A stretch of DNA of 64,000 nucleotides from Cyanophora paradoxa CCMP329 (GCA_004431415.1 QPMI01000408.1:744001-808000), one strand, 5' to 3'. Shown: positions 14,621 to 54,479, counted from the stretch's first letter. Translations and numbers: made by a program. Notes: generated by a model not told the origin, from the sequence alone.

Positions 14621-16100
14621 TTAGGCTGCTCCCGCCGGCGCGGGGCCAGCGGTTGCCGGTCCGGCGGCGCCCTGAGGCGGAGCTGCGGCACCTGCCACTC
14701 GCGGCCTCCCGCGGGCCGGGCGTGCAGGGCGCTCAGTGTCGCGGACACGGAACGGGATCATGCAGTCGATGTGCACGATCGTTTCACGCGTGTCCCGGCT
14801 CTTGTGCCGGTTCGGGGCGGCGGCGCCGTAGGGCCGTGCGAGGCCGCGAACGACGTACGTGTAGCCGCCGGGGTGCACATCGAGCACCGTGAACGGGCCG
14901 ACCAGGAGTTGTACAACCCCTTATCGCGGTCGCCCAGCCAGCACAGGACCTTGTCGCCGACTTCGAAGCGGCGGCGGTCGGGCAAGTCGCCAGTCCGGTA
15001 GATCAGGCGCTGCCGATACACGCGACGGTGCTCGCGGAGAGCTGCCTCGCGGTGCTTGGCCGCGCGGACGACGGCAAGCAGGTACTCCGGGTAGCTCATT
15101 GTTTCCAAGAGCTCAACGCCGAAGCGCACGTCGGCGGGCAACGTCAGCTCGTGCCCAGGTGCAGCACCGCGGGCGAGAAGCCAGTGGCGGCGTGCACGGT
15201 CGTGCGGAGAGCCAGCTGCACCTCGTGCACGTGCTGGTCCCACTCGTGCAGCGGCTCGCGGTTGGCGCGGCACGCAGCGTGCAGCAGCGTCTTGATGACA
15301 CCGCCCAGCCGCTCGACCAGGCCGTTCGTGGCGTGGTGGTACGCAGCGGCGTAAATGAAGCGCGTCCCGAGCGAGCGGAAGAACTCATTGAAGAGCCCTC
15401 CTTCAGGTTCGACCCGTTGTCGACGAGCAGTCGCAGGGGCACGCCTTCATCCGAGACGAACTTGCGGGCGGTTCCAGCAAGGTCAGTCCCTCAAGGTCCG
15501 CGATCGGGTACTCGTGGTGCCATTTGCTCCAGGCATTCACGTACACGATCATGTAGCGCAGACCGCGCGGAGTCGGGTCTAGGTGGAAGATGTCCACCTG
15601 CCACAGGTCGTTTCGGCCCTCAGGCTCGATGACCGCGATCGCCGTTCGCCGCGGCTTCACCGCTTTCGCGAACTGGCAGCAAGCGCAGCTGCGCACGTAG
15701 CGCGTCACTGCAGCTAGCATTCCTGGCCACCAGAACCGGAACGCGATCCGGCGGGCGACGATCTGGGCGCCTCGGTGGCCCCAACCGTCATGGTACGCGT
15801 ACATGACGCGGTCCTGCCAAGTCTCGGGCAATACAGGCACGTAACGCGCGCCCGGCAGGACCGGCCGGCGGACGAGCACGCCGTCCGTGTCGATGTCGAA
15901 TTTCTCGGCAAATTCGGCAAACGACGCCTGTGCCTTGAGGCAGGCATAGCAGTCGCCAGACAGGCAAGACGCGCGCGAGCACCGCGCGTAATTCGTCTTG
16001 TTCTCCAAGTAGGCGAACAGCCGCTGCCCAAGCGGATCGTCCCGCTGCGCGGCGAGCAGCCGCACGCGTCGAGCGGGGAACATGTACTTGAGGGACTCCG
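14621..16100 (-). CDS. Gypsy integrase (frameshifted)
   Basis: HHCC finger YHDGWGHRG...CACCQ. Core motifs WQVDIF, LLVDNGSN and YHHATNGLVER. C-terminal GPF/Y-like LVGPFTVL...VHIDCM, spread over several frames. Confidence 0.9.
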
Positions 16101-17299
16101 GGACGGGCCCGTCAAGCTTCGGGGCGTAGACGCAGTCCCACGCGTCCAGCACGCGCTCGAGAACGCGGGGCTTGCGCCGATCACTCACTTCGCCGAGCTC
16201 GGGCCCTGGCGCGATCGCGCTGGAGGAGAACATCTCCATTTCAGGCGCCGGCTCGGCGTCGGCAGCCGCGGGGCCGCCGCTCTGCTGATCGGAGGAGGGC
16301 GCCCCTGAGGCCGCCGCTCCGCTTGACCCGGCCGTAGCCGCAGCCGTGCTCGAGGAGCTGGCGCCGGAAGGCGCCCTGACAGCCCCCGCACCGCCCTCAG
16401 GACCCTCGTCGGGATCGTCCTGATAGGGGTAGATCGGCGGGCCGCAGCGCCAGTGGCGCGGGTTTCCCGGCCGGCGCGGGGTCTTGCCCGGCCGCGGCTC
16501 AGGCTGGGGCTGCTGGTCGCGCGGCAGCGGGGGCGTCTCCCCTTCGTACCGGCGCGGGCCGCTCAGGTAACGCGCCCGGACCAGCGGGAGGAGGTCCAGC
16601 GGGAACCCATCCTCGTCGAGCGAGGCGCGCGTCGTCGGCTCGGAGGGCATGACGGGCGGCGCCAGCTCAGGCTCAGGCTCGGGATCGAGCTCCATCGGCT
16701 CAGGGGCCGGAGGCGGACTGGGCGACCGAGGCCGCGGGGGCAAGCCCTCACCGACAGCCAATTGGTGCCACTCGTCCACCTGAGCGCGCAGCTGCGCCCA
16801 GGTGACGGCCTGCTTCTGGCCGCGCCGCTGGGGCGGGCCGGCGTTCGGCAACTGAGGCGCAGCCGGCAGGGCCGCGCCGTCAGCGTGGGCCGGAGCCTGC
16901 TGCGGGTCTCCAGCGGGCCGGGAACGGGCGCGAGGCGGCGCCGACGCGGCGGCCTGCGCGGCACCGGGCGAGGCGGGCTCGCTCTCTTCGACGCGGATCG
17001 GCTCGTCGTCCGCGTCCTCACGGAGGGCCTCAGGCGGCGCGCGCGCGATGCGGCGCCGGGGTCCCTCAGCAGGCTGCACGTCGGCGCGAGAGGCCGGGGC
17101 GCCCTCGAACGCAAGCTGCCGCGCGAGGCGGGCCATGCGTCGCGACACTACAGCCTCTACGGGGGCTGGCTCGGGCTCCGGGCAGAGCTGCTTGAGCTCG
17201 CTTCGGCGGGAGGGCTGGCGCCTCAGCGCTGGCCGCCTCGCCACTTCCCTCGACGGCTACCGCGTACAGGGGCAGCGGCTCGTCGAGATCGCCGGGCTG

Positions 17300-19983
17300 G
17301 GGCACGCCAAACCCGCGAGCGCCGGGCAGCGCGTCGGGCGCGTCAGAGCTGCCGTCGGCACCGCCGGGCGCGAGGACAGGATGCTCGCCGGGCAGGCGCG
17401 AGCAGGCGTCGGGGCCGCCGTTGTTGCGCCCAGCGCGGTATTCTACGACGAAGTCGTAGGACTGCAGGAGCAGGGCCAGCGGCCTAGCCTCCCCGTAGTC
17501 TCGTCGCGCGTGCGCAGCCATTGGAGCGCATGGTGGTCAGTGCGCACAGTGAACTGGGGCCCGCCTAGAAGGAAGTGCCGCCAGTATTTGATTGCCCAGA
17601 CTACCGCCAAGCACTCGAGCTCAGTGGCGGAGTAGTTGCGCTCGGCAGGGGCCAGAGTGCGGCTAATGAAGCCGATCGGCCGCTCCACCGGCGGCGTCGA
17701 TCCGTCGAGCTGCGACAGGATCGCGCCAATCGCGTAAGTCGACGCGTCAGTCGACAGGATGAAGGGGCGCTCGAAGTCCGGGTACTTCAACACCAGATTC
17801 AAGAGCAACGCAGCCTTCAGTTTCTCGAAAGAGGCCTGCTGGGCCTCACCCCAGTTCCACTCGGCGTCGCGTAGCAGCAAGCGCTGCATCGGCTGCACGA
17901 TCCGTGCAAAGCCTTCCACGAAGCGCCGGTAGTAGCCAGCCAAGCCCAGGAAAGACCGCAGCCGGTCTGCGTCCGTGGGCGCCGGGTAGTCGCGGATCAC
18001 AGCGAGCTTTGCCGGATCCTGGCGGATCCCCTCTGCAGAGACGAGGTGCCCCAGCAGATTGATCTCGGATACGCCGAAGCGACACTTCGACGGCTTCAGC
18101 CGCAGGTTGGCGGGCACAATTGCCTTGAACAGCGCCTCGAGATCAAGCAGGTGCTGATCGATCGAGGGCGAGAACACCGTGATATCGTCGATATACGCGG
18201 TGACACAGGTGGTGAGGAGGGGCCCGAGGATTGCGGTGACAGCGCGGGAGAACGCCGCTGGCCCGTTGGTTACACCGAACGGGGTCACGCGCCACTCGTA
18301 CTGGCCCCAGGGCACGACGAAGGCAGTGAAGCGCCGCGACGCGGGGTCGAGCGGCAGCTGCCAGAAGCCGCACACTGCGTCTCCTACCGAGAAGACGATG
18401 GCGCCACGCAGGCGGTCGAGCTGATCGTCGATCCGCGGCAGCGGGAAGACGTCACGCTCGGTAATGGCGTTCAGGCGTCGGTAATCGACACACATACGCC
18501 ACGTCCCATCTTTCTTCGGGGCCAACACTAGTGGCGACCCGTACGCAGCCTCAGAGGGCTGGATCAGGCCCAGCTCTAGCAGGCGGGCAATCTCGGCTCG
18601 CGCGAACTGCTCAGCGTGCGGGCTCACGCGCCGCGGCGGCGTGTACACGGGCAGGTGCGAGTTGAGCCGGATCACGTGCTGGTAGTGCATGAGGTCTTGT
18701 GTACCCCCTACAGCCGTGACGCTTTCAGCGAAGGCGCCCTTGTAGCGCTTCAGCAGAGCCTCGAGGCGGGCCTTCTGCGGGCCGTCGAAGCCGGGGTGCG
18801 AACCGACCTCAGGGATCTTTCCCCGGATCCGGTTCCACTCCTCCTCTTCAGAGCTCGACGACCCCGTCGGCTCAGGGTGAGGCGGCCCGCTGGATGGACC
18901 GGCCTCATTGGGATCGCGGGGCGGGGCGCGGACGGGCTCCTTGCCCTTGCGGCGATCGGGCGGAGCCTCGTCGTCAGACCGCTCCATCGGGGGCGTGTCG
19001 TCGGAGTCGTCAGGCTCGCGCTTCACCTCTGGAGGTGCATGGCGCACCGAGCAGTTAGGGCCAGCAAGAGCGGCGCTCGAGCTGGAAACCAGCGGCGCGG
19101 CTGCAGGTACCGGTGCAGCGGACGAAGTCGCGACCGCGTTCACAGCAGCTTCCGCAAGGCGGGCAGCGGCGAGGGCGCGGCGCGCGTTGCGCACGGAGCG
19201 CCGCTCGCGGCGTTCGGCGCGGCGCTGAGGCCGCTGCGCTGCGTGCTCCTCTGGATCGGTCCAGCCCGGATAGTCATCATCGAGCTCCGAATCCGAGGTG
19301 TCTTCGACAGTAGAGTCGCTTTCCCGGTCGCTATCGGAATTGCGATCATTGTAATGACCAGGGAACTCGGGCGGCGCGAGATCGTCGTCATCGCTGTCAT
19401 CGCCCGGGGGCGGCGCGGGCGCTGGCTGTGGAACCAGGTCCGGCAAGTCGCCGTCGAACACGTTTCCTTGCGCATCAATCAGCGGCGGTGGCGCGTCGTC
19501 GGCTGCGCGGGGCAGCGGTTGCGGCGTCTGGCCGTAGTTCACACCAGGCCGATCGGGATCGGTGCTGATGACGCGCAAGATGCGAGGCGGGGCTGGAGGG
19601 CCGCTGCCAAGCGTGTTGGGGTGGGGAAGAGGGGTGCGCTCGCTAGCCGGCGCAGGCTTGAAGCCGGGCGGGGCATTATTCGCGAGGCGGCGCAGAGATC
19701 TGAATCCCTGCCCCCTACGAGGGTCGTACGGCCGCAGCGTGCGCACGTAGGCGTCGGCCACGTCGGCGGCGGTAGCATTTATTGACGGCGGCTCGAATTC
19801 GAAGTCGCCGGGCGGGAGGTGGCGGGCCTCCGCCACTGCAACGATGGCGCCCGCCTCGAGGTGGACGTCGACATCGGCAGGATTTAAGAGGCGGACATAG
19901 ATTGCTCCACGCTCGCCTAGCTCTGCACGGGAGTGCAGTTGGTTCGGGGCTAGGACTCCGAGCGCCGGCAGTGAATCCGGCGC
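17300..19983 (-). CDS. Gypsy reverse transcriptase and RNase H
   Basis: RT motifs SPLVLAPKKDGTWRMCVDYRRLN, FPLPRID, PFGVTNGPAAF and YIDD. RNase H motifs STDASTYAIGAILSQ, NYSATELECLAV and TDHHAL. Confidence 0.97.
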
Positions 19984-20299
19984 TCGGGATTTGCGCTCTC
20001 AATGCGTAAATCGAGTTTTGCGCCGACTGAATGCGAGTAAAGAAGACCGTAGCCGAGCGCCAGGCACGAAAGAGCTGAGCGACTCGCTAGCCGCGGAGCG
20101 GCGCGAGGCGAGCGCGGGAGGAGCAGCAGGCTCCAGCGAGCGCCCCGCAAGGGACTAGCTGAGCTAGCCGTTGGGCCGAGCCGGCGGGCTTGAAGCCGCC
20201 GAGCTCCGGGGGGTACGCTGATTCGGGGTTTCCCTTCACGCCCAGCTTCGCTCACGGCCGCTCCAGGCCACGAAGCGACCAGCGGCGAAGCGAAATCGC
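19984..20299 (+). repeat. Split direct repeat A1 (316 bp)
   Basis: Near-identical to 30223-30538 and similar to the reverse complement of 62507-62822. Confidence 0.92.
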
Positions 20300-21147
20300 C
20301 ACAGCCAGCACTGCAATCACTCCTAAGCAGCCCTGTCGGACCGGCGGCCGCACATCTCGGCCGTCCCTCCAATTGCACAGAGCCGACCAACTCTGCAGCA
20401 CCACGGCTAGCTGCAGTGGAGCATGATCCCGCGGCAGCAACTGTAGAGCAGTTCTGCCTCGATGGCTGGCCGGAGCAAACCCTGTTCCCAGCGATCCTCC
20501 CGGAATCGGCCTCGGGCCCCAGTTCACGCTTGAATCTGGTTCCTTACTGCCGTGCCGGTACGTGGATTCACGTCCGGGCCCGCCCGCCACGCTCGCATTC
20601 AGCGCGCGCTGGCTATCCCGGGGGCCCACCGTCAGTCCGCGGCCGCCGGCTTGCTTATACACTCTATAAGCGTGTATTGAGACCCGCCGCGCGATTCCTC
20701 CGGATCCCTGACCATTTCCTGCGCGCATGCTCCGGGAGCTCCGGATCCTCGGCGCTCAAGCCGGACGCCGCCGCCGCGCCACGTGCACGCCGGCGGAGCT
20801 CGCGCGCGCAGGACCGCCCCGGCCTGCTGGCGCTCGCGCTGCAGGCCCACCGCGAAGTCGGGGTTTGGATCGTGCCATACGCGTGATCCACCGACGGACG
20901 GTGCCCGGCCGCTCGCGCGGCTTGGGGTGGCGAAGAAGTCGAGGGCACCTCGACGCTCGGACCGGCCGGCGCCGCGCCTTTACGACGCACCGGCGCCGGC
21001 TGAGCCCGCGCAGGACAGCCTCGACCCGCGTGCGTTCGCGCTGTGGGTCCCCGTTCCAGCTTCAGGACTGGATCCCTTCCAGGATCCTCGGCGGACAGTG
21101 CCCGGCTCGCTCACGCGACCCGGGGAGCTCGAGGCGACGGAGTACGA

Positions 21148-22265
21148 CTCTCGCGTGCGCCTCGCGCTGCGAGATGGCCCGCGTGCGTGCGCGCTGTGGG
21201 CCCCGTACTCGGAGTTCGGAGGCCGCGCGCGACTCTCGCTGTGGCCCGATCCGCCCCGGCGGATTCCGGCCGCACCCGCGGCCGGCGACCTTCCACCAGG
21301 AGCACGGATCTCGCGAGCGTCTCGCTGTGAGATGGGCCCGCGTGCGTTCGTCGCTGTGGGCCCCGTGCAAGGAGTTCCGGGGCCACGTGCGTCCCGCTGT
21401 GGCCCCGGGCCGCTTCAGCAGCACCGGCCGCTCCCGCGGCCGGCAAACTCCCAACCTGGCCTTCGGCTCTCGCGTGCGCCTCGCGCTGCGAGACGGCCCG
21501 CGTGCGTACGCGCTGTGGGCCCCGTACTCGGAGTTCGGAGGCCGCGCGCGGCTCTCGCTGCGGCCCGATCCGCCCCGGCGGATTCCGGCCGCGACCGCGG
21601 CCGGCGAACTTCCACCAGGAACACGGATCTCGCGAGCGCCTCGCTGTGAGATAGCCCGCGAGCGTACACCGCTGTGGGCCCCGTGCGCGGATCCCGGGGG
21701 CGGCGTGCGCCTCGCTGTCGACGTCGACGTCGCCCCGGGCTCCCTTCCACCCTCCGTCTCGCGTGCGCTTCGCGCTGCGAGACGGCCCGCGTGCGTTCGC
21801 GCTGTGGGCCCCGTACTCGGAGTTCGGAGGCCGCGCGCGGCCCTCGCTGCGGCCCGATCCGCCCCGGCGGATTCCGGCCGCACCCGCGGCCGGCGAGCTT
21901 TCACCTGGAGCACGGATCTCGCGAGCGCCTCGCTGTGAGATATATAGCCCGCGAGCGTACATCGCTGTGGGCCCCGTGTGCGGAGTTCGGGGGCGGCGTG
22001 CGTCTCGCTGTCGCCCCAGGCTTCCTTCCTCCCCCACCCTCGCCGGCGTCTCGCTGCGAGCTCGAGCCGGCCCGCGTGCGTTCGCGCTGTGGGCCCCTTC
22101 CCTCGGAGTTCGGGGCCGCGCGCGGCTCTCGCTGCGGCCCGATCCGCCTCGGCGGACCCCGGCCGCACCCGCGGCCGGCGAGCTCCACCCCGGAGTACGG
22201 ACCTCGCTGGCGTCGCGCTGCGAGATGGCCCGCTGGCGCTTGTCGCTGCAGCCTGCAGGCCCCGT
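21148..22265. repeat. ~300-bp tandem repeat, about 3.7 diverged copies with internal subrepeats
   Basis: Units start near 21148, 21467, 21757 and 22050, with recurrent GCCCGCGTGCGTTCGCGCTGTGGGCCCC. Confidence 0.85.
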
Positions 22266-22839
22266 GCACAGAGTTCCGGGGGCTGCTGGCGCGCACGCTG
22301 CAGCCTCGCGATCGATCGCGATCGCAGAGTGTTTTTGTTTGTCACAGTGTTTTAATTTTGCTCAATTTAGTCAACTCAATGATTGACTCGACCTGAAAAC
22401 AAAACAAAAACAAAAGAACAAAAAACAACACACGCATGCGCATTGCGCACCGGTGCCACCGGCCGGACCCGCGCCGGTCCCGCGGACCCGCGCCGGCGCG
22501 CGCGGTCTCGCTGCCAGCGCATATGCATACAGCCTGATGCAGGCTCTGCGGCCCCTGCCAGGCGCCGGCTAGCTGGCGCTTCCGCTCCCGGTACCGTAGT
22601 ACCCGGTACCGCCACACTGCCGCAGTGCAGCAGCAGTGCGAGTCAGCCGGCGCCGGCCGCGGCCCGCGGGCGCGCGCGCGCGCGCCGCCGCAGCTGCAGC
22701 CTGGCAGCTGCCAGGCTGGCCCTTCCGCTGCCGCAGGCCTAGGGCTGCCGCTGGCGCGTTACGCTGCGGACTACAGTCCTCGCTGGCGCTCTAGATCTCG
22801 CTGCGAGTCGGCCCGCTGGCGGCCTTCCGCGCATCCGCG

Positions 22840-25800
22840 CCGCGCCCTCGCGCGCCCCACGCCGACGCTCGACCCGCCGCCGCCGCATAACCTGCTTGCG
22901 CAGGGCGGACCGGCCGCTGATCATGACTCGCCCGCGACGCTCTCCGGCGGGCACCCTGGGCTCCACCTCCACGGCTCCGCCCCGAGGTCCGAAAGCGACC
23001 TCGCGCGGCCCCGCACCGCCGCTCGACCGCCACCACCGCCTGACCTGCTTGCGCAGGGCGGGCCGGCCGTGGGCTCGCCTGCAGCGCCTTCCGGCTGGAG
23101 CCCCTTGGGCTCCACCTCCGCCCCGAGGTCTGAAGCGACCTCGCGCGGCCCGGCAACGCCGCTCGGCTCGCCGCCTCCGCCTGACCTGCTGGCGCAGGGC
23201 GGGCCGGCTAGGTCCAAAAATCGACCTCGCGCAGCCCCGCATCGCCGCTCGACCCGCCGCCGCTGCCTGACCTGCTTGCCAAGGCGGGCCGGCCGCTGGC
23301 TCGCAGGTAGCACTCCCGGGCTGGAGCCCAGGGCCCCACCTCCGCCCCGAGGCCGACCGCTGGCCCGTCTGCGGCGGAGTCCACCGCACCGAGGTCCGTC
23401 ACGACCTCGCGCGGCCCCGCGCCGCCGCTCGACCCGCCGCCAACTCATACCCTGCTTGCGCAGGGCGGGCCGACCGCTGGCTCGCATGCAGCGCTCCCAG
23501 CTGGAGCCCAGGGCTCCACCTTCGCCCCGAGGTCAGTCACGACCTCGAGCAGCCCCCGCGCTGCTGCTCGACCCGCCGCCGCCGCATAACCTGCTTGCGC
23601 AGGGCGGGCCGGCCGCTGGCTCGCATGCAGCGCTTCCCGGCTAAAGTCCAGGGCCCCACCTCCGCCCCGAGGTCCGTCACGGCCTCGCGCGGCCCCGCGC
23701 TGCAGCTCGGCGTACCGCCGCCGCTTATCTTGCTTGCGCAGGGCGGGCCGGCCGCTGGCTCGCATGCAGCGCTCCCCGGCTGGAGCCCAGGGCTCCGCCT
23801 CCGCCACGAGGTCCGTCACGGCCTCGCGCGGCCCCGCGCTGCCGCTCGACCCGTCGCCGCCGCTTATCCTGCTTGCGCAGGGCGGGCCGGCCGCTGGCTC
23901 GCATGCAACACTCCCCGGCTGGAGCCCAGGGCTCCACCTCCACCCCGAGGCCGTCACGGCCTCGCGCGGCCCCGCGCGGCCGCTCGACCCGCCGCCACTG
24001 CTTATCCTGCTTGCGCAGGGCGGGCCGGCCGCCGGCTCGCACGCAACACTCCCCGGCTGGAGCCCAGGGCTCCACCTCCACCCGAGGCCGTCACGGCCTC
24101 GCCCGGCCCGCGCTGCCGCTCGACCCGTCGCCGCCGCATTACCTGCTGGCGCGGGGCGGGCCGACCGCTGGCTCGCAGGCAGCACTCCTCGGCTGGAGCC
24201 CAGGGCTCCGCCTCCGCCCCGAGGTCCGCCACGGCCTCGCGCGGCCCCGCGCTGCCGCTCGACCCGCCGCCGCCGCCTGACCTGCTTGCGCAGGGCGGGC
24301 CAGCCGCTTCCTCACCTGCGGCACTCTCCGGCTGGAGCCCAGGACTCCACCTGCACCCCGAGGTCCGTCACGGCCTCGCGCGGCCCGGTGCTGCCGCTTC
24401 GCTCGCCACAGCCGCCTGACTCAGTGAATCACTGGCGCAGGGCGGGCCAGCCGCTGAAGCGCCCGCCGCATTCTCCTGCTGGAGCTCAAGGCTCCACCGC
24501 CTCCCCGAGGTCTGCAGCGACCTCGCGCGGCCCCGCGCCGCCGCTCGCCCCGCCGCCCGCGGCCGCCGCATAACCTGCTGGCGCAGGGCGGGCCGGCCGC
24601 TGGCTCACCTGCCGCGCTCCCCGGCTGGAGCCCAGGGCCCCACCTCCGCCCCGAGGTCCGTCACGGCCTCGCGTGGCCCCGCGCTGCCGCTCGACCCGCC
24701 GCCGCCGCATAACCTGCTTGCGCAGGGCGGGCCGGCCGCTGGCTCGCATGCAGCGCTCCCCGGCTGGAGCCCAGGGCTCCACCTCCGCCCCGAGGCCCGT
24801 CACGGCCTCGCGCAGACCCCCGCCGCCGCTCGACCCGCCGCCGCCGCTCATCCTGCTTGCGCAGGGCGGGCCGGCCGCGGGCTCGCATGCAGCACTCCCC
24901 GGCTGGAGCCCAAGGCTCCGCCTCCGCCACGAGGTCCGTCCCGGCCTCGCGCAGCCCCCGCGCTGCGGCTCGACCCGCCGCCGCCGCATCACCTGCTTGC
25001 GCAGGGCGGGCTGGCCGCTGGCTCGCATGCAGCACTCCCCGGCTGGAGCCCAGGGCTCCACCTCCGCCCCGAGGTCCGTCACGGCCTCGCACGGCCCCGC
25101 GCTGCCGCTCGACCCGCCGCCGCCGCGTAACCTGCTGGCGCAGGGCAGGCCGGCCGCGGGCTCGCAGGCAGCGCTCCCCAGCTGGAGCCCAGGGCCCCAC
25201 CTCCGCCCCGAGGTCCGTCGCGGCCTCGCGCGGCCCGCGCTGCCGCTCGACCCGCCGCCGCGGCCGCCGCATAACCTGCTGGCGCAGGGCGGGCCGGCCG
25301 CTGGCTCACCTGCCGCGCTCCCCGGCTGGAGCCCAGGGCCCCACCTCCGCCCCGAGGTCCGTCACGGCCTCGCGTGGCCCCGCGCTGCCGCTCGACCCGC
25401 CGCCACCGCATAACCTGCTTGCGCAGGGCGAGCCGGCCGCTGGCTCGCATGCAGCGCTCCCCGGCTGGAGCCCAGGGCTCCACCTCCGCCCGAGGCCCGT
25501 CACGGCCTCGCGCAGACCCCGCCGCCGCTCGACCGCCGCCGCCGCTCATCCTGCTTGCGCAGGGCGGGCGGCCGCGGGCTCGCATGCAGCACTCCCCGGC
25601 TGGAGCCCAAGGCTCCGCCTCCGCACGAGGTCCGTCCCGGCCTCGCGCAGCCCCGCGCTGCGGCTCGACCCGCCGCCGCCGCATCACCTGCTTGCGCAGG
25701 GCGGGCCGGCCGCTGGCTCGCATGCAGCACTCCCGGCTGGAGCCCAGGGCTCCACCTCCGCCCCGAGGTCCGTCACGGCCTCGCGCGGCCCGCGCTGCGG

Positions 25801-28800
25801 CTCGACCCGCCGCCGCCGCATAACCTGCTGGCGCAGGGCAGGCCGGCCGCGGGCTCGCAGGCAGCGCTCCCCGGCTGGAGCCAGGGCCCACCTCCGCCCC
25901 GAGGTCCGTCGCGGCCTCGCGCGGCCCCGCGCTGCCGCTCGACCCGCCGCCGCCGCATAACCTGCTGGCGCAGGGCGGGCCGGCCGCTGGCTCGAACGCG
26001 GCGCTCTCCGGCTGGAGCCCAGGGCTCCACCTCCGCCCGAGGTCCGTCACGGCCTCGCGCGGCCCCACACTGCCGCTCGACCCGCCACCGCCGCACCACC
26101 TGCTTGCGCAGGGCGGGCCGGCCGCTGGTTCGCATGCAGCGCTCCCCCGCTCGAGCCCAGGGCCCCGCATCCGCCCCGAGGTCCGCCACGGCCTCGCGCG
26201 GCCCCACACTGCCGCTCGACCGCCACCGCCGCACCACCTGCTTGCGCAGGGCGGGCCGGCCGCTGGTTCGCATGCAGCGCTCCCCGGCTCGAGCCCAGGG
26301 CCCCACCTCCGCCCGAGGCCGTCGCGGCCTCGCGCGGCCCGCGCTGCGCTCGACTCGCCGCCGCCGCATACCCTGCTTGCGCAGGGCGGGCCGGCCGCTG
26401 GCTCGCATGCGGCGCTCCCAGCTGGAGCCCAGGGCTCCACCTTCGCCCCGAGGTCAGTCACGACCTCGAGCGGCTTCGCGCTGCTGCTCGACCCGCCGCC
26501 GCCGCATAACCTGCTTGCGCAGGGCAGGCCGGCCGCGGGCTCGCATGCAGCGCTCCCCGGCTGGAGCCCAGGGCTCCACCGCTGCCCCGAGGTCCTTCAC
26601 GGCCTCGCGCGGCCCCGCGCTGCAGCTCGGCGTACCGCCACTGCCTGACCTGCTGGCGCAGGGCGGGCCGGCCGTTGGCTCGTCCGCCGCGCTCTCCGGC
26701 TGGAGCTCAAGGCTCCACCGCCGCCCCGAGGTCCGTCACGGCTTCGCGCGGCCCCGCGCTGCCGCTCGACCCGCCGCCACCGCATAACCTGCTTGCGCAG
26801 GGCGGGCCGGCCGCTGGCGTGCCTGCAGCGCTCCCCGGCTGGAGCCCAGGGCTCCACCTTCAACCCGAGGCCTGTCAAGGCCTCGCGCGGCCCCGCGCTG
26901 CCGCTCAACCCGCCGCCGCCGCATCACCTGCCTGCGCAGGGCCGGCCGCTGGCTCGCATGCAGCGCTTCCCGGCTGGAGCCTAGGGCTACGCCTCCGCCC
27001 CGAGGTCCGTCACGGCTTCGCACGGCCCCGCGCTGCCGCTCGACCCGCCACCGCCGCACCACCTGCTTGCGCAGGGCGGGCCGGCCGCTGGCTCGCATGC
27101 AGCTCCCCCCGGCCGGAATCCAGGGCTCCACCTCCGCCCCGAGGTCCGTTCACGGCCTCATGCGGCCCCGCGCCGCCACTCGACCCGCCGCCGCCGCATA
27201 ACCTGCTTGCGCAGGACGGGCCGGCCGCTGGCTCGCATACAGCGCTCCCCGGCTGGAGCCCAGGGCTCCACCTCCGCCCCGAGGTCCGTCACGGCCTCGC
27301 GCAGCCCCGGGCTGCCGCTCGACCCGCCGCCGCCGCATAACCTGCTTGCGCAGGGCGGGCCGGCCGCTGGCTCGCATGCAGCGCTCCCCAGCTGGAGCCC
27401 AGGGCTCCGCCTCCGCCCCGAGGTCCGTCACGGCCTCGCGCGGCCCCGCGCTGCAGCTCGGCGTACCGCCACCGCCTGACCTGCTTGCGCAGGGCGGGCC
27501 GGCCGCTGGCTCGACCGTGGCGCCCTCCGGCTGGAGCCCAGGGCTCCACCTCCACCCCGAGGTCCGTTCACGGCCTCGCACGGCCCCACGCCACCACCCG
27601 GCTTGCCGCCGCCGCCTGACCTGCGGGTGCAGGGCGGGCCGGCCGCTTGCCCGCCCACCACGCTCTCCTGCTGGAGCTCAAGGCTCCACCACCTCCCCGA
27701 GGTCTGCAGCGACCTCGCGCGGCCCGGCGCCGCCGCCCGGCTCGCTGCCTCCGCCTGACCGGCTGGCACAGGGCGGGCCGGCCCTTAGCCCGCCCGCGGC
27801 CGTCGGACGCTTCCTGGCTGGAGCTCAAGGCTCCGCCACCGCCCCAAGGTCTGCAGCAACCTCGCGCGATCCCGCGCCGCCGCTGAACCCGCCGCCGCCA
27901 CCTGACCTGCTTGCGCAGGGCGGGCCGGCCGGTGGACTGCGTGCAGCGCCTCCTGCGGTAGCTAAAAGCTCCGCCGCCGCCCGAAGGTCCGTAGCGGCCT
28001 CGCGCGGTCCCGCGCCGCCGCTCGACCCGCTACCGCCGTCAGACCTACTCGCGAAGTGCAGGCCGGTCGCTGGCTCGCCAGCAGCGCTCTCCTGCTGGAG
28101 CTCAAGCCTCCACCACCGCCCCGAGGTCTGCAGCGACCTCGCACGGCCCCGCGCCGCCGCTCGGCTCTCCGCCGCCGCCTCGCCTGCTTGCGCAGGGCGG
28201 GCCGGCCTCTGGCCCGCCCGCGTCGCCCCCCTGCTGGAGCTCAAGGCTCCTTCGTGACCCTGTGGTCCGTCACGGCCTCGCGCGGCCCCGCGCCGCCGCT
28301 CGACCCGCCGCCTCCGCCCGACCTGCTTGCGCAGGGCGGGCCGGCCCCTGGCTCGCCCACAAGGCCCCTGGCTGAAGCTCCAGGCCCCGCCACTACACCG
28401 AGGTCTACTGCGACCTCGCGTGGCCCCGCGCCGCCGCTCGGCTTGCCGCCGCCGCCTGACCTGCTTGCGCAGGGCGGGCCGGCCGCTGGCTCGCCCGCAG
28501 CGCCTCCTACTGGAGCTCAAAGCCCCGCCGCCGCCCCAAGGTCCGTGGCGACCTCGCGTGGCCCCATGCCACAGCTCGGCTCGCCACCGCCGCCTGACCT
28601 GCGTACGCAAGGTGGGCCGGCCTCTGGCATGCCCGCGGCGCTCCCCGGCTGGAGCTCGAGGCTCCACCACCTCCCCGAGGTCTGAAGCGACCTCGCGCGG
28701 CCCACACTACCGCTCGGCCCGCTGCCATCGCTCCCCCAGCTTGCGTAGGGCGGGCCGGCCTCTAGCTCGCCCGCGACGCTTCCTGGCTGGAGCTCAAGGC

Positions 28801-29250
28801 TCCACCCCCGCCCCGAGGTCTGCAGCGACCTCGCGCGTCCCCGCGCCGCCACTGAGCTCGCCACCGCCGCATAACCTGCTTGCGCAGGGCGGGCCGGCCT
28901 CTGGCCCGCCAGCAGCGCTCTCCTGCTGGAGCTCATGGCCCCACCACCGCCCCGAGGTCCGCAACGACCTCGCGCGGCCCCAAGCCGCCGCCGCCTCGCC
29001 TGCTGGCGCAGGGTGGGCTGACCGCTGGCTCGCCCACGGTGCTGTTCCACGGGCGCTCCAGGCCCTGAGGCCCCGCGACCGCTCCCGCGGTCTTATGCGG
29101 CCCCCACGCCTCCGCGCGGCGCGCTTCCGCCGCCTAACCTGCTTGCACAGGGCAGGATGGTGGTGGGCTCGCTTTCGGTGCTCACCGGCTGGGATGGTTT
29201 AGATTCCGCCGCGGCCCCGAGGTCCGCACCGGCCTCGCGCGACCTCACGC
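22840..29250. repeat. ~139-bp GC-rich satellite array, about 46 monomers
   Basis: CCTGCTTGCGCAGGGCGGGCCGG-type anchors at 24713, 24852, 24992 and 25131 (spacing 139-140). Edges are degenerate. Confidence 0.95.
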
Positions 29251-29668
29251 CGACGCGCAGTGCGACCGCCTTGCCCGCCCTCCACCCGTAGCGCGCCCCT
29301 GGCCCGCACCGCCCAGCATGACTTGTCGGCGGCGGGGATCTGGCGGCGCCACTATCCAGCGCCGCCCCCGGTTCGTCGATCGTCCCATAGGGGTACGGCG
29401 AGAACCCCCCAGCCTTCTGTGCCGGCTCGTTACCTCGGGCTTCTTGGCCCGCCCCGGCCCCACGTTGTTGTCCGAATTCACGCTCTCTGCCCGTTCCTCC
29501 TACAGCGCAGTGCGCTGGGGGAGGGAGGCCTAGCGTCTGGGACACGTGGGGTGGCAGGGGAAGGAGGAAGGAGAGGGGGGGAAGGGGGGAGGGCGAAACA
29601 ACCTTCGCCCTCTTGCTCACTTTGTTCCTATGTATGCTATTCTGGCTGGCTGTGACCTGACTCTTGTT

Positions 29669-31757
29669 TGGTAGGGGGTACTGCATTCGTGCTGCGTTCG
29701 CTACGCTCACCCCCGCGGCCTCCGGCGGCGGTACCCGGCTTCGGATCCCCGAACCCGGAAGAAACCGCGTACCCCTCCCCGGGGTACGCCGTTCGCCCCA
29801 ACCGGCCCCACAAGGCGCGGCCCGAGGCCGAACGCGTACCCCGGAGAGGGGTACGGCGTCAGAGCGGCCCCGATCAAGTGTACCCCGAGCGGGTACCCGA
29901 TCGGTCCCGCGACGGCCCGAGCGGAGTACCCCCGAGCGGGGTACACCGTCTCGGCCCGCAACGGCCCTCACCGGGGTACAGGCGCCTAGCGCGCTTACCC
30001 CGGAGAGTTCTTGTTCCGGAACTCGCAAGGGCGAGGCCGGAATGGCATACGGCGATCCGCCCTGGTCGATCGCCAACGTATTATGATACGTGGTTCCCGG
30101 GAAAGCAGCCTTGAGCTGCCGTACCTCAGGGCCCAACCGATGCGCTATCCCGTGCATCTAGCTAAGTAGTGTCAGGCGTAAGATAGCTAGGTCTGCTGCA
30201 TTCGAATGAAGCGAGGCGTAAATCGGGATTTGCGCTCTCAATGCGTAAATCGAGTTTTGCGCCGACTGAATGCAAGTAAAGAAGACCGTAGCCGAGCGCC
30301 AGGCACGAAAGAGCTGAGCGACTCGCTAGCCGCGGAGCGGCGCGAGGCGAGCGCGGGAGGAGCAGCAGGCTCCAGCGAGCGCCCCGCAAGGGACTAGCTG
30401 AGCTAGCCGTTGGGCCGAGCCGGCGGGCTTGAAGCCGCCGAGCTCCGGGGGGTACGCTGATTCGGGGTTTCCCTTCACGCCCAGCTTCGCTCACGGCCGC
30501 TCCAGGCCACGAAGCGACCAGCGGCGAAGCGAAATCGCTCCCGCCCACCTCCCCGCGATTTTTCCTCCGGGGCGCCGAACCTCGCTACCCAGCGAGCCCC
30601 GGCCCGACGCCGCGAAAGTCGCGCAAGGGCAATGCATACGGCGACCAGCACCAGCGTTCGCCGAGGGTATTATAATACGTGGTTCCTTGTCGTCTCCTGC
30701 GCACGCGGTTCCGGATGGTACTCCCGCTCGGTGCTGGCCACCAGCGCGGACGTGGTCGTGCACAGCTGATCCGTGGTAAGTTACAATGGTTCCGTCGAAG
30801 ATTCGGGCACGAACTGCGCAGACTCTGTGTACCGGTCGTCATTCGTGTTTTCCACTCGCGTCCGCTGGACCCGCTTGTGCCGGGCCGGGGCCCAGCGCGC
30901 GCCCAAAAAACAGTCGCGCGGCTTCGTTGCGAATCTCGAGTGTTTTCCCGCTGGGTTTTTACCCTGTTTTTCCGCTGGACCCGCGGGTGCCGAGCTGGGG
31001 TCCAGCGCGTATGGCTGTTACGCGGTTTTTCCCCGCGGCGCTGTAACTTGTTGGGTTTCGAGTCTGCCGCCCCGGCGCGGGGGGAGACTTCGCGCATGAT
31101 CCGGAGTTCTGTCGGTTTTTCGATGAGCCTTGATTGTCGTATTTTTGTACGACTCCTTGGTCTCATGGTCGTCTGCGAACGACGGGCACGCTACGCGCGT
31201 GGTAGGGGGTACTGCATTCGTGCTGCGTTCGCTACGCTCACCCCCGCGGCCTCCGGCGGCGGTACCCGGCTTCGGATCCCCGAACCCGGAAGAAACCGCG
31301 TACCCCTCCCCGGGGTACGCCGTTCGCCCCAACCGGCCCCACAAGGCGCGGCCCGAGGCCGAACGCGTACCCCGGAGAGGGGTACGGCGTCAGAGCGGCC
31401 CCGATCAAGTGTACCCCCGAGCGGGGTACCCCGATCGGTCCCGCGACGGCCCCGAGCGGAGTACCCCCGAGCGGGGTACACCGTCTCGGCCCGCAACGGC
31501 CCTCACCGGGGTACAGGCGCCTAGCGCGCTTACCCCGGAGAGTTCTTGTTCCGGAACTCGCAAGGGCGAGGCCGGAATGGCATACGGCGATCCGCCCTGG
31601 TCGATCGCCAACGTATTATGATACGTGGTTCCCGGGAAAGCAGCCTTGAGCTGCCGTACCTCAGGGCCCAACCGATGCGCTATCCCGTGCATCTAGCTAA
31701 GTAGTGTCAGGCGTAAGATAGCTAGGTCTGCTGCATTCGAATGAAGCGAGGCGTAAA
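29669..31757 (+). repeat. 3' repeat module B1 (29669-30222), A2 (30223-30538), C (30539-31199), B2 (31200-31757)
   Basis: B1 and B2 are near-identical ~555-bp direct repeats. The whole module recurs inverted at 61297-63381. Confidence 0.92.
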
Positions 31758-32395
31758 CGGCCCGACGTCTAGGGTCGGGGCCGCGCTTTCAGGCGGCAGG
31801 CGCCCGTCTAGGACGCAGCGGACCCGGCATTCGCGCCAGTTCCGTTCGATTTTGACAGGGCGCTGGACCCGGACAAGCAGAGGCCCTTGTGCTTGCCCGG
31901 GAAGCGAAAAGGGATCACGTGGGGCTTGTAGTGCGCGTCGCGCGCGTGCAAGCACCAGCCGGAGCGCGTGGTGTCGATGCGGCCGTCAATGCACATGATA
32001 GTGCCGATGCCGATCAGCATGTCTGCGTCCGGGCCGAGAGTTCCGTCCGGCACAACGTGCACGGCACGCGAGACGTAGACGTCGCCAAAGCGGAGAACTA
32101 CGTGGGCTATTTCAGCCTCAATCGTCGCGTGGTGCATGAAGGCACGGAGCGTCTTTGTGCCGGTGTAGCGGGTGCCCTTAGGCATCATCCGCCGCTCGGC
32201 CACTTCACCCATTGCGCCAGTATCGAAGATAAACTTGACGCGAATCCAATCGCCTAGCGTGCCGTCGGGGCCGAGGGCGTACACATACCCATGGCACTGG
32301 AGCAGCAGCCGGCGAAAATCATGCGGCAGCCCGTTAATCCCATCGATAACTCGACCAATCGGGACCGGGGCCGGAAGCTGGCTGGAGTCGGGATC
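31758..32395 (-). CDS. Gypsy aspartic protease (retropepsin) and following region
   Basis: KFIFDTGA catalytic motif and DMLIG motif. One frameshift near 31895. Confidence 0.85.
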
Positions 32396-32501: not shown

Positions 32502-32784
32502 TGTCGGATAGGAAGTATTCCCACCCGATTGGGCGCCCGCGCGGTCCAGCGCGGGGCCGGCTCCCTGTGCTGGAGCAGCTGTAGATGCAGGCTGGTGTAT
32601 TCTCTGTGTACCCGGAAGACTACTGACTCTGTACCCCTAAGACAGGTAGAGGCAGGCCAGCGTAGGCTACCGCGAGGCAAGCCTACAGGAAGAGACTATG
32701 CTAAGGCACTCTAGACTGCGTCAGGCACCAACTAGCTCTAGTCGCTAAGTCATCTCATAGCCTAGGGAAACTAGCCATGCGACA
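32502..32784 (-). repeat. 3' LTR of the LARD-like element
   Basis: TGTCGG...GCGACA, identical by eye to 50413-50695, with the PPT adjacent. Confidence 0.95.
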
Positions 32785-33242: not shown

Positions 33243-36200
33243 GGAAGAAAACACGAGGAGGTATCCGGGCCACCCATCAGGCCCAACGAAAGAGCAGGGC
33301 ACGATAGAGTGGACCGCCGGCCGTACGCCTTTCTTGGGCCGCACGCGCGCAAGCAAAGCTCACACTCTACCACTCCTCTGAGCTCTGGGGCCCATACTCC
33401 AGAAAAGGGAACGAAAGTCTTCAAGGAGCAAACCGCCACCAACCCACACTTTGCCCGACAAGACAGCACAAGTGTGATCGGCCGACGTCCCCTGAGAGAA
33501 CCAAGGTTGAGGCAAAGCTGGCAAAGAAATCTGCCCTCACACATCTCATCACAGCGCGCGCGTCGCCCTCGGCATCCCTTCCCGGGACCCTCGGCGCCGA
33601 CGGTAGGGGCAAGGTATAGGTTTTGTTCAGGATGGTTGGTAGAAATTCGCTCGTGCTCCGGTCGACGTCCTCTGTTTCGATTCACAATTTGTGATTAACG
33701 ATTGTCGACTTGAGTCTCCAATCCATGGTCGGCCAATTGTCGAGCGGTGGCCACGGCCACGGGTGCATGCTCAGATGGCCGACTCTTGAGCCGCGCGACC
33801 GCGAAGGAGAGAAATGCCTCGCGGCGAATCCTCCAGCGATCCAGATATTGAAGTTCGTGTTTGCGCGTAGCTGTAGCCAGACCGCTAGACGGCGCGCAGC
33901 CAGCCGATGAGATCCGATCCCAAGCCTTAGAAGGCCGCATCAGTGAGTAGTGAGAACGAGTGCACTGGCCGTAGCTGGGCTCTCCAGGTCTGTCGAGACA
34001 GCACTTGCCAGTCCGTTCCGGACACGATTACTGGCCGTGCACGTAACAACAGGGCCTGAGGGCCATCAGCCCCAGTAGCACCGCCACCGATGGGTTTTCG
34101 AGGCGGGATGTGGTTCGCCGGCGGCGAGACCCGGATCCCGGCAAGCTGCCGTGTGCGGAGGCTAGGGCGAGCCGTTCCGATCCGTAGCAGGCGCGATCGC
34201 GACTACGAGCTCAGAGGCTCGAAACTGATTCCGACTCCTCTTCCGCTGAAGAGGGGAAGCCGGGGCGTGGCAGGCATACGCGCGCCGATTGGGAAGCGCT
34301 CTGGCGTTGAACCAAGAGGTGGCCTTCGGCTCGAGTGCCTGTGCACGTACTCCTCTTCCGCTGAAGAGCGGAAGCGGTAACAGGGCGAACTGCTCCCGAT
34401 GCCACTCCCTCTTCGGTTAAGCACCGTCCCCGGTGCTCCACCACGAGGGTCCGTGATTGGATCGGGGCGGCGTGGCCGTCCAGAGGAATTTTGCGAACGC
34501 AGCCTGAAAGTGCGGTGCGATGGCGTGACCATGCACGACCATGACCGTCTCTCTGTACATGTCGCTAAATTCCACGGCGTTCCGAGCTGCAGCTGTTGTC
34601 CTTCTCGATTCGTACTCGATCGAGGGGCAAGCGTAAGCAGCGGAGCCAGAGCGAGTTGAGTTGGTTTTGGCTTTGGTTCTGAGTTCGGCGTCGAGTCGTG
34701 GGCTACCGGACGATTGCGACAGCCGGCTACGATTGTTCCGAGCCCGGGGGCATCGCAGGGCCCGTCATATGCCCCTTTGTTTTTGGATGGGACCCGAGCT
34801 TGAGGGCACTGAGCGTCGAGGTTCGAACGCGCGCCGATCAAGCTTAAGCTCAAGGTCCGACGGTCTGGACCAATTACAAGCTTTCAGCACACGACTGCGC
34901 GCGAAGCGCTCTGGCTGTGTACGCCGGTGTCTATTGGCACGTGCTTCCGCTTTTCGCGGCTGCAGGCCAGGCGCCGGAGCGCCATGCATATGGCCCAGTG
35001 GCCGGGGCGCCATTGCCAAACTGGTGACGTCGACCGTGGGCGCGCCTCTGCCAGGAATAAGATCCCGGGTCGACGTTGCCAACGTCGGGTGCGAAATCGA
35101 TATATATAATCGTAAAATCGAGTATGGTATCGAGTTCGGTCCCACATTAATTTGTGGGCTCAAATGACCAAGCCACGGGGCAGAAGTAAGGTCCACTGCG
35201 CCACTGCCGGGAATAAGATCCCGGGCCGGCCACAGGAGTGCAATCGCTCTGTAGCGTATCGAACTCAAGGATGACCGCGGCGGATCCCCCGGCCATGCTC
35301 AGGCGCCGTGTCCGCGCGACACTGTGACAGGGCAGGTGCCGTGTCCGCGCAAAACTGCATGCGCCGAGGCGCCGGGCAGAATGCAAGCTTCACCGCCACA
35401 CGAGCACGAAATCAGCTTTAATTTGCTTGCACGGTCGGCCTTCTCACGGCGGCCCGTGTAGCCTACGCCTCAATGCCGTGCTGCAGCATCGTAGCTTGAT
35501 CGCGGGACCGGATCCCGGGATTGACGTGCTACGGTATTCGTGCAGGGTCGCTGGCTCCGCGGGCATCATATGCATGGCATGGCCACGTGCACTCGCGTGC
35601 GTATGGTCATAAAGTTGCCCGGCGACCGCGCCGTAGCGCTTCCGAGTTCAAGGTTCGACGTTCGCTGCCCGTAATCACAGGCGACGCGGAGTGATTCGCG
35701 CAGGATCAACGTCCGGTACCAGTGCGAAAATGTTTCGTGCACGTGGATCGAGGTCGCTGGGCCTGCGGCCAGCATGCGCGTAGAAGCGCACCGAGCGCGG
35801 CTGCCCGCGGCCGTGCACGTGGCGGCTGAGCGCGCGTCGCAAGATTGCAGGGGCCGCGAACGACGCGGGGTCAAAGGCCGCCATGCATATGGGGCCATGG
35901 GGCCGAAGGCCAGGAGCGGGGCCGGTCGGGGCCAGTGGCTGTGCACACGATCGCGAGCATCGTGCCGACAACATGATGCCATGCATATGGTCACGATGCA
36001 TGCCGTAATGCTCGCAATGGCGAGCTTAAGCGCCGCCTCTTAGCGGGTTCCGGATCGAGAATCCAAAGCCGGCTAGTTCAAGCATGCCATGGCCAGCTAG
36101 GCAGACCGCTTTCCGAAATCGGTTGCTGTGCACGCGGCCTCGGGCCTTAGCTTGCGAACTGGGGCTCACGACCGTGGGCTTCAGTCCGTGACAAGTACAC

Positions 36201-48200: not shown

Positions 48201-48389
48201 TGTGCCGGCACCATGTGCACGGGGCTCATGATCATGATTCGACGATTGTGATCAGGTCTGAGTCAACGTTCGGCCGGCGTCGGAGCCGCAGTGCCGGGCG
48301 CCGCGCGCTGGCGACAGCTACGTATACGTATACGTTGAGATCGAGAGCTGAGAGAGACATCGGCCGAAGAAGGCTCATGTTCTCTTTGC
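33243..48389. repeat. 7.57-kb direct tandem duplication (33243-40808 and 40822-48389)
   Basis: The ORF track repeats with a ~7578 offset. The differences seen are single-base homopolymer indels. A 13-nt insert lies at the junction. Confidence 0.97.
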
Positions 48390-50412: not shown

Positions 50413-50695
50413 TGTCGGATAGGAAGTATTCCCACCCGATTGGGCGCCCGCGCGGTCCAGCGCGGGGCCGGCTCCCTGTGCTGGAGCAGCTGTAGATGCA
50501 GGCTGGTGTATTCTCTGTGTACCCGGAAGACTACTGACTCTGTACCCCTAAGACAGGTAGAGGCAGGCCAGCGTAGGCTACCGCGAGGCAAGCCTACAGG
50601 AAGAGACTATGCTAAGGCACTCTAGACTGCGTCAGGCACCAACTAGCTCTAGTCGCTAAGTCATCTCATAGCCTAGGGAAACTAGCCATGCGACA
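50413..50695 (-). repeat. 5' LTR of the LARD-like element
   Basis: Direct copy of 32502-32784, followed by the TSD CGGGG. Confidence 0.95.
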
Positions 50696-53600: not shown

Positions 53601-53780
53601 CTGGGGCAGCGGCCGCGTCCGCCAGCGTCTCGGCCGGGCGCCGTCGTGGTTCCCAGACTTCCTCCGCGCAATCTGCGAGCCCGTCCGCCGAGGAAGCTCC
53701 CACGCTCCCTGCGCTTCCCCATGCACGTGCTCAAGCAGGGGGCGCGGCGCCAGCAGACGCTTTTCGAAGCGAACCTGATG
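50696..53780 (+). CDS. LINE ORF2: APE C-terminus and non-LTR reverse transcriptase (frameshifted)
   Basis: SDHFPV; AAGPSG; LIPKSG..VRPITL; LDIRRAYDSV; GLPQGGTESP; AYADDT; FKFLGVW; thumb region YIVNSVLIPRITY. Confidence 0.95.
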
Positions 53781-54479
53781 AGCCCGCCGTACGTGGAGGG
53801 ACAGTTCGCCTGGCACCCGCAGGGCTACCTGACGCGCATCGTTAGCAAATGGGAGGAGCGCGATGAAGACGATGGGCGCCTCCGCGTGTACGTCCGCCTG
53901 GAACATTGGATCTGGCGCGACCGCACGATCCGCGACGGCGACGGGGAGGGCGCCGCCCGATTCTACAAGTGCACGATGCTCAAAGATGAGTGCGATGCGC
54001 GGTACACGACGGACGATGCGACAGCCAAGGCGGCGCGCCAGCGCTGCGACCACTCTGAGCCGGAGTCAGGCGCCTGCCAGTGGACCGAGGACTCTATCCA
54101 CATTCACCCGGCCCGCCTCCTCGAGCTAATCACCCCGGCGACCCGCACGCGGAAGCACGAACCGTACGCGGTTGTGAAGCTAGAGAGTCAGGAGTGGTGG
54201 ACCGAGTTCCGCACGACGCTCTTCCTTCCTCCGTGGGAACGCGATTGGGATTACGAAGCGGATCCCTCCGCGCAGCCCCAGCCGCCGTCGGGCTACAAGC
54301 AACGCCGCCCGGGTACAGTGCCACCGCGCACCGCACCGCCTGTATACCCGGATCGCCAGCCTCTCGAGCACTTTCTCATCGACCCGGAGCCCCTAGCCGA
54401 CCCGTTCTGGAACCTCGTAGCCCAGGAGCTTCGCCGCGAGGAGCTCCCCGCTGCCCGGCCCCGAGAGTGGCGGCGACCG

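Follow-up and report, generated by a model that had tools for sequence, protein, structure and literature searches.

Within the order DIRS, whose retrotransposons encode a tyrosine recombinase (YR), the PAT, Ngaro and VIPER elements have a split-repeat architecture: A1 is found at the 5' end, B1, A2 and B2 come in succession towards the 3' end, and the internal repeats are placed downstream of the YR gene (PMC4157794, PMC6681497). TOC1 of Chlamydomonas is presented as a non-autonomous retroelement that depends on DIRS/TOC3 elements (PMC9940879, PMC5613634), and its internal tandem array is known from the title of a work in the reference list of PMC3623635. Tandem arrays are also found as passengers of LTR retrotransposons such as Ogre of Lathyrus, where short satellite arrays are carried along and can seed longer ones (PMC7004042). 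The literature searched contained no account of YR retroelements from glaucophytes.

The locus considered here occupies positions 19984-31757 of a 64,000-nt stretch of DNA (the window, meaning the whole stretch analysed) from the glaucophyte Cyanophora paradoxa. Very probably it is one young member of a multi-copy family that encodes no protein and derives from a YR retrotransposon of the order DIRS, with ends of the PAT/Ngaro/VIPER type; it is a recently inserted element without genes of its own. BLAST self-comparison of the 11.8-kb element resolves split direct repeats in the order A1...B1-A2...B2, and tandem repeats account for 63% of its length, the 139-bp array alone for 54%. The element and its insertion target are laid out as follows.

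15403-19983, minus strand: Ty3/gypsy pol gene, the insertion target (RVT_1, RT_RNaseH, Integrase_H2C2)
19984-20299, plus strand: A1, 5' terminal repeat (316 nt; 315/316 identical to A2)
20300-21144, plus strand: family-specific 5' interior, non-coding (no Pfam match)
21145-22231, plus strand: 159/289-bp tandem repeat (TRF, 21149-22226: period 289, 2.6 copies, 86% matches; period 159, 3.6 copies)
22232-22835, plus strand: non-coding linker joining the two tandem repeats (no repeat family, no Pfam match)
22836-29220, plus strand: 139-bp satellite-like array (46 monomers, 6,385 bp, 78% G+C; nhmmer profile)
29221-29629, plus strand: family-specific 3' interior, non-coding, unlike the YR-encoding copy (no Pfam match, no database protein)
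29630-29668, plus strand: 39-nt block before B1 (39/39 identical to 63420-63382, minus strand)
29669-30222, plus strand: B1, internal copy of the 3' terminal repeat (against B2, 0 substitutions and four 1-nt indels)
30223-30538, plus strand: A2, internal copy of the 5' terminal repeat (BLAST self-comparison)
30539-31199, plus strand: A2/B2 spacer (661 bp; ungapped identity of 94.4% with the YR-encoding copy's spacer of 651 nt)
31200-31757, plus strand: B2, 3' terminal repeat (ends ...GCGTAAA, as the YR-encoding copy does at 61297)

The complete A...B-A-B repeat set, which a preliminary description of this DNA had reported, is therefore present in the arrangement of YR retrotransposons, with A1 matching A2 and B1 matching B2. 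Taken together, A1/A2 and B1/B2 differ by a single substitution in 870 nt (0.11%). This near-identity could reflect gene conversion instead of youth. Resetting of the ends of YR retroelements at each cycle is not proven, so that the clock read from these end repeats is softer than that of LTRs.

The same description held that the element had moved as one unit, and the insertion site bears this out. The open frame of the pol gene runs for 76 codons across the point where 19983 is joined to 31758, and in public run X2 a contig passes from 19983 directly into 29 of the 30 nt of 31758-31787; contigs from runs X1 and X20 diverge from the window at the same base. This empty site is that of paralogous gypsy copies, the left-flank contigs all carrying paralog-specific differences. 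Since 19983 and 31758 adjoin in these paralogous empty-site contigs without gain or loss of a base, the insertion is exact and, as the flanks themselves also read, lacks a target-site duplication (TSD), as is usual for YR retrotransposons. Contigs from the public runs begin or break exactly at 19984, the first base of A1, and in run X20 the sequence of the B1/A2 junction was recovered as a loose end before 19984. The boundary between B1 and A2 is the predicted circle junction.

Between A1 and B1 lies an interior of 9,369 bp (20300-29668). Sixteen ORFs of 156-460 amino acids cover it and none has a Pfam match, so that the element is a non-autonomous derivative and not an autonomous member; no gag, RT/RNase H or YR domain was found, in agreement with what had first been noticed. 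Pfam likewise gave no match in the spacer at 30539-31199. The element contains no Rfam family and no tRNA, and a tmRNA call elsewhere in the window, at 168-714, was rejected as spurious in a eukaryote. Word-based protein searches with two interior ORFs (403 and 191 amino acids) returned no match in a collection that evidently lacks gene calls from these non-coding stretches, the 403-residue query also exceeding what short Logan contigs can match. Three ORFs of the window were looked up by exact product, and none was on record.

The closest relative in the window is a YR-encoding element on the opposite strand, of which two parts can be recognised.

61297-63420, minus strand: 3' module of the YR-encoding element (39 nt, B1', A2', spacer, B2'); the element is cut by the window end
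63618-63998, minus strand: C-terminal 127 codons of the YR, with the motifs HSLRRGGATAAA...RHGRW...YI (Pfam PF00589, E=0.003)

The match of the 3' module to this element, extending some 40 bp beyond the repeats, had been pointed out in the preliminary description and is upheld: by BLAST, 29630-31757 is 95.7% identical over 2,142 nt to 63420-61297 on the minus strand. A1 is 96.8% identical to A2', B1 is 98.7% identical to the B repeat of that copy, and B1' and B2' are identical to each other at 559 of 559 positions. The A and B repeats and the spacer differ between the two elements by 1.3-5.6%, as against no difference in the 39-nt block before B1, and this block is a candidate cis signal, as far as sequence comparison can suggest one. 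On the minus strand 197 nt separate the YR stop codon from the shared 39-nt block and B1' that follow it, which places an HxxR...Y-type recombinase just upstream of the internal repeats in the related copy. The Phage_integrase score (E=0.003) is below the curated cut-off because only 127 amino acids fall in the window. Relatives in the database, among them some that bear PF00589 or are named integrase, align with the motif block; the search with the fragment found only distant fragments, 33-71% identical over part of the query and none from Cyanophora paradoxa. These matches support the reading 'tyrosine recombinase' without placing the putative helper in a subgroup; the domain that separates PAT/DIRS from Ngaro is the methyltransferase. 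The claim that the likely helper itself sits in the same window holds in part: a YR-encoding relative with common ends is there, but only as the last 127 YR codons and the 3' module, and this copy is better described as a member of the likely helper family than as the helper.

The autonomous family and the present element have their ends in common. Homology to the YR-encoding copy stops 39 nt before B1, and at the 5' side contigs of other A-bearing elements part from the window after 20308 or 20312, having matched it for 9-13 nt beyond A1; ends shared with an autonomous family thus enclose an unrelated non-coding interior, as in TOC1-like elements. The 5' part of this interior is probably not peculiar to the locus. 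In four public runs, several variant contigs covering 20328-20933 were found at roughly 7-10 times the depth of the copy-specific contig 20883-21140, and in run X17 the ratio was 12-37 times, the depth of a Logan contig not being a copy number; the runs that give this ratio date from 2012, 2019 and 2024. Variant contigs and depth ratio together indicate that the 5' interior is multi-copy. The contigs show that other copies skip 20934-21137, and their loose ends enter the 159/289-bp repeat at different points, so that the number of its units differs between copies. In the window this repeat consists of four in-register copies that are 76-94% identical.

Most of the interior, as the preliminary description had it, is a 6.4-kb satellite of 139-bp monomers next to a further tandem repeat, the 159/289-bp repeat. 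The array was first found by TRF and its limits were set by an nhmmer profile. Its 40 core monomers have a mean pairwise identity of 82%, and the edge monomers are degenerate; two monomers, at 24364 and 27703, are 147 nt long. With 27 occurrences of a 34-nt monomer core, where 0 are expected, the pattern is not due to chance. No higher-order structure was detected in the array besides one young event, the duplication of a block of five monomers (24511-25213 and 25214-25904). The two blocks differ by 13 substitutions in 691 nt (1.9%), as compared with the single change in 870 nt of A plus B (Fisher p=2e-4), which makes the youngest duplication in the array about 17 times more diverged than the terminal repeats. 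Given this difference and the 82% identity of the monomers, the array predates the insertion, and it was most likely carried along as cargo, so far as the sequence of this one locus can tell; the same order of events, with monomers older than the insertion, had been suggested before and is still the best reading. Independent termini or a TSD, by which a secondary insertion of the array might have been recognised, were looked for and none were found around it. Its flanks contain no inverted repeats, and a nested foldback or TIR carrier of the array was rejected on that account.

How such an element could have moved can be pictured from the parts it has kept. Of the autonomous family it retains A1 with the 9-13 nt past it, the 39 nt before B1, and the module of B1, A2, spacer and B2; the place of the autonomous coding interior appears to have been taken by 9.3 kb of non-coding sequence, tandem repeats making up two thirds of this. 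The element would be transcribed end to end, and an autonomous relative, for example of the family to which the copy at 61297-64000 belongs, would supply the gag and RT/RNase H that package and copy the RNA. The internal B1/A2 junction would then serve to close the cDNA into a circle, which the YR of the relative would insert without a TSD. On this model the 139-bp array would be a passive passenger in the template. Four parts of this picture are inferred: transcription, mobilisation in trans, a circular intermediate, and carriage of the same array by other copies.

A bolder extension, for which we see some room but which we regard as unlikely, is that the 139-bp repeat originated in the gene-less family of about 12 kb with split repeats and owes its spread in this genome mainly to it, some copies of the family having seeded long arrays with a chromosomal role. 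If this were true, all arrays of the monomer would trace back to copies that had been retrotransposed, and the case would be one of satellite dispersal driven by a YR retroelement in a glaucophyte.

Among the alternatives to cargo carried through transposition, one would confine the array to this copy: a shorter non-coding derivative inserted here and gained the array later, either through a nested insertion or because an older array at another place recombined ectopically with it or converted it, so that the array was itself never retrotransposed. The interior of the family is certainly plastic, as the skipped 20934-21137 and the varying number of 159/289-bp units attest. The array nevertheless shows neither termini, inverted repeats nor a duplicated target, and its edges grade into degenerate monomers inside the element, and we hold later acquisition to be improbable. 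Equally hard to credit is a dedicated system for satellite dispersal or chromosome function, in which the family would exist for the sake of the array, beyond being a parasitic deletion derivative; the array might seed centromeric or heterochromatic arrays or offer repeated packaging or binding sites. Its share of the element (54%) and the well-conserved core of the monomer, with 14 invariant columns in the consensus and many more conserved above 90%, would fit such a role. Against this, core conservation is expected anyway from the recent common descent of the monomers, and no independent long arrays of the monomer were seen, either in the window outside the element, where no monomer copies occur, or in a metagenome scan with the 34-nt core, which gave 0 matches. 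Conserved RNA structure as a sign of function was also considered and rejected, the consensus fold being weak (-13.6 kcal/mol) with almost no covariation (term -0.5). Expansion in situ from one or a few monomers after insertion is already disfavoured and very improbable, for although the five-monomer duplication shows that unequal exchange acts on the array, that youngest event stands at 1.9% against 0.11% in the terminal repeats and the remaining array is about 18% diverged without high-identity blocks.

The preferred reading, an old array carried by a young gene-less element, derives its value from a single, cleanly delimited locus at which the empty site is exact, the end repeats are nearly identical and the internal array is old; together these three observations make the case that a YR retroelement can take 6 kb of tandem repeat with it when it transposes. 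This bears on the transposon-borne spread of tandem arrays and is of help to the annotation of this genome, where elements of this kind would otherwise be recorded as 'satellite' and stray repeats.

This returns us to the question of how the element relates to the systems already described. With the PAT-like, Ngaro and VIPER elements it has in common the order of the split repeats and the lack of a TSD, but these are autonomous, with gag, RT/RH, YR and in some cases MT, whereas 19984-31757 encodes nothing. SIRE of Trypanosoma cruzi is likewise non-coding and built from the ends of a YR retroelement (VIPER), but it is only about 0.4 kb long, comprises the A2-B2 region only, is of debated mobility and carries no cargo (PMC6681497). 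The LTR carriers, with which large non-autonomous LTR derivatives may be grouped, resemble it in spreading a tandem array as a retroelement passenger (PMC7004042); they differ in having an integrase and LTRs, where the present carrier is gene-less, with YR-type ends and no TSD. The closest likeness is to the TOC1/TOC3 pair of Chlamydomonas reinhardtii (PAT/Toc group, order DIRS): TOC1 is protein-less, shares split terminal repeats with a YR-encoding relative, TOC3, by which it is taken to be mobilised (PMC9940879, PMC5613634), and, to judge by the title mentioned above, contains an internal tandem array, as 19984-31757 does. The present element differs in its host lineage, with a very GC-rich glaucophyte genome, and has no sequence relationship to TOC1. 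Its 11.8 kb are about double the length of TOC1 (>5.6 kb, PMC3623635), and its array, 46 x 139 bp or 54% of the element with the 159/289-bp repeat adjoining, is far larger than that of TOC1, so far as these sources describe the latter. The suggestion that this is a new system without a place among known ones is not borne out by comparison with TOC1 (PMC9940879, PMC5613634) and with LTR-borne satellites (PMC7004042); rather than a new system or class, 19984-31757 is a good fresh example of a kind known since TOC1.

The boundaries proposed in the preliminary description for the gene-less element (19984-31757, +, 11,774 bp) were reproduced exactly by a BLAST comparison of the region with the window. 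Its split direct repeats stand in the order A1...B1-A2-spacer-B2; in the same comparison A1 (19984-20299) and A2 (30223-30538) are identical at 315 of 316 positions, and B1 (29669-30222) and B2 (31200-31757) show no substitutions and four 1-nt indels. All four indels lie within a 47-50-bp tandem repeat of B (about two units, at 29865-29967 and 31396-31502) and may be sequencing or assembly errors instead of mutations. Of the element, 63% is tandem repeat, and an array of 139-bp units accounts for 54%.

Segments between the repeats of the element
20300-29668 (+), bracketed interior, 9,369 bp
about 21145-22231 (+), 159/289-bp tandem repeat inside the interior
22836-29220 (+), array of 139-bp units, 46 monomers, 6,385 bp, 78% G+C, delimited by profile search
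30539-31199 (+), spacer between A2 and B2, 661 bp

The bracketed stretch of about 9 kb had been described as lacking gag, RT and YR, and Pfam is indeed blank for all interior ORFs scanned, 16 ORFs of 156-460 aa that cover the interior, as well as for two ORFs (193 and 281 aa) of the spacer/B2 region. The long open frames of the element are as expected at such G+C content, and a search of the element returned no Rfam family and no tRNA.

The element lies within a Ty3/gypsy pol, for which no LTR pair was found in the window.

Parts of the split gypsy pol
15403-19983 (-), left flank of the Ty3/gypsy pol split by the insertion; remainder 31758 to about 31985
17443-19836 (-), RVT_1 and RNase H of the gypsy pol (Pfam)
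15403-17244 (-), integrase zinc domain of the gypsy pol (Pfam)

With 19983 and 31758 brought together, the pol open frame runs 76 codons further. Logan contigs from four public runs (2012, 2019 and 2024) were compared over 19400-21140; one from run X2 departs from the window at 19983, its next 30 nt agreeing with 31758-31787 at 29 of 30 positions, and longer contigs from X1 (1,255 nt) and X20 (1,169 nt) depart at 19983 too. The public runs contain uninterrupted paralogous gypsy copies of about 98.6% identity, and the paralog-specific flank differences of the contigs indicate that these are empty sites in other gypsy copies, not necessarily alleles. The empty-site contigs fix both insertion ends to the base, and their comparison with the window reveals neither a target-site duplication nor a deletion, as expected of recombinase-mediated insertion. 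That contigs join 19983 to 31758, with the pol frame open across the join, supports the earlier view that the element moved as a unit.

Core monomers of the array (n=40) have a mean pairwise identity of 82%, edge monomers being more degenerate, and no higher-order periodicity was found. The only young event in the array is a five-monomer duplication (24511-25213 / 25214-25904), whose two copies differ by 13 substitutions over 691 aligned nt (1.9%), whereas A1/A2 and B1/B2 jointly carry 1 substitution in 870 nt (0.11%), a significant difference (Fisher p=2e-4). If the end repeats record or overestimate the time since insertion, the array as it now stands predates the insertion in its entirety; the likeness of A1/A2 or B1/B2 could be kept by conversion. 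The contrast between duplication and end repeats supports the proposal that the diverged monomers are older than the insertion and that the array was probably cargo. Arrival of the array on a nested carrier is unlikely, since the independent termini for which a check had been suggested are missing, neither inverted repeats nor separate termini being found around it. On the simplest reading, the RNA template included the array.

The element probably belongs to a multi-copy family. At 20328-20933 each run yields several variant contigs, which differ by 2-5% and carry small indels, and their summed depth is about 7-10x (12-37x in run X17) that of contig 20883-21140, which matches the present copy with 0 mismatches; this gives a rough copy number of about ten, contig depth not being a copy number. 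The variant contigs of other copies pass over 20934-21137 and run into the 159/289-bp repeat at differing places; this repeat is therefore a family feature, present in different numbers of units from copy to copy. Agreement between the window and the contigs of other elements with an A repeat ends at 20308 or 20312, 9-13 nt beyond A1, where these contigs diverge into ATG-containing sequences; such elements are probably autonomous relatives.

The 3' module and about 40 bp beyond it had been said to be common to an element encoding a tyrosine recombinase (YR) in the same window (61297-64000, -, cut by the window end), and BLAST bears this out, as 29630-31757 matches 63420-61297 (-) at 95.7% identity over 2,142 nt, including 39 nt before B1. 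Compared without gaps, the A repeats of the element and of this coding copy agree at 96.5-96.8%, the B repeats at 98.7% and the spacers at 94.4%. The block before B1 (29630-29668 vs 63382-63420) is identical at 39/39 positions, while neighbouring modules differ by 1.3-5.6%, and its conservation marks it as a candidate cis-acting signal. The B repeats of the coding copy, B1' and B2', are identical at 559/559 positions, so that copy is young too.

Recombinase frame of the coding copy
63618-63998 (-), ORF of the YR C-terminus, running off the window end and finishing with HSLRRGGATAAA...RHGRW...YI

This ORF lies upstream of the common 39 nt, with 197 unshared nt between. Its Pfam Phage_integrase score (E=0.003) is under the cut-off, since the window holds no more than 127 residues of the protein. 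The motif block can be aligned in every column with fragments from the database, of which some bear PF00589 or are named integrase. Since the ORF stands directly before the common module, the internal repeats are just 3' of the YR, the layout of PAT, Ngaro and VIPER elements (PMC4157794, PMC6681497). Of the suggestion that the window holds a likely helper, what stands is that the coding copy, with its YR C-terminus, is a member of the candidate helper family and only possibly the source itself; its Gag and RT would lie outside the window.

The derivative retains A1, a few nt after A1, the 39-nt block and the complete B1-A2-spacer-B2 module, and in these parts lie the candidate signals that would act in cis during transcription, packaging, priming and closure of the circle. 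An autonomous relative would supply Gag, RT/RNase H and YR in trans. The B1|A2 junction is identical to that expected from joining B2 to A1. A 20-nt circle-junction sequence (the last 7 nt of B and the first 13 nt of A) lies at 30216-30235 and recurs at 18/20 inside A (20004-20023), 27 nt downstream start-to-start; that the two are paired recombinase sites is speculative.

Elsewhere in the window, 33243-40808 and 40822-48389 form a tandem duplication of a 7.57-kb unit (99.8% identity, 13 nt between) that has short ORFs only, the one scanned having no Pfam match. A perfect 283-bp direct repeat (32502-32784 and 50413-50695, 17.9 kb apart) brackets this duplication and may stem from a large rearrangement or mark where another element ends. 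An ORF run at 51360-58999 (+) resembles a non-LTR retrotransposon.

Domains of the non-LTR-retrotransposon-like ORF run
51360-52760 (+), RVT_1
54080-55438 (+), RNase H, below cut-off
57167-58999 (+), Ulp1/Peptidase_C48 domain

The element is thus probably a YR retroelement of the non-autonomous type, with an array that it carried along. It is of the same kind as TOC1 of Chlamydomonas, in another lineage; among YR elements, SIRE and VIPER form a further pair of non-autonomous and autonomous members (PMC6681497). Our literature search turned up no description of YR retroelements from Cyanophora. The proposal of a new system lacks support, since the same kind of element is already known and LTR retrotransposons that carry and spread arrays are well documented (PMC7004042). 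Compared with the known elements, the present element differs in size, and its array, at more than half of its length (54%), is much larger.
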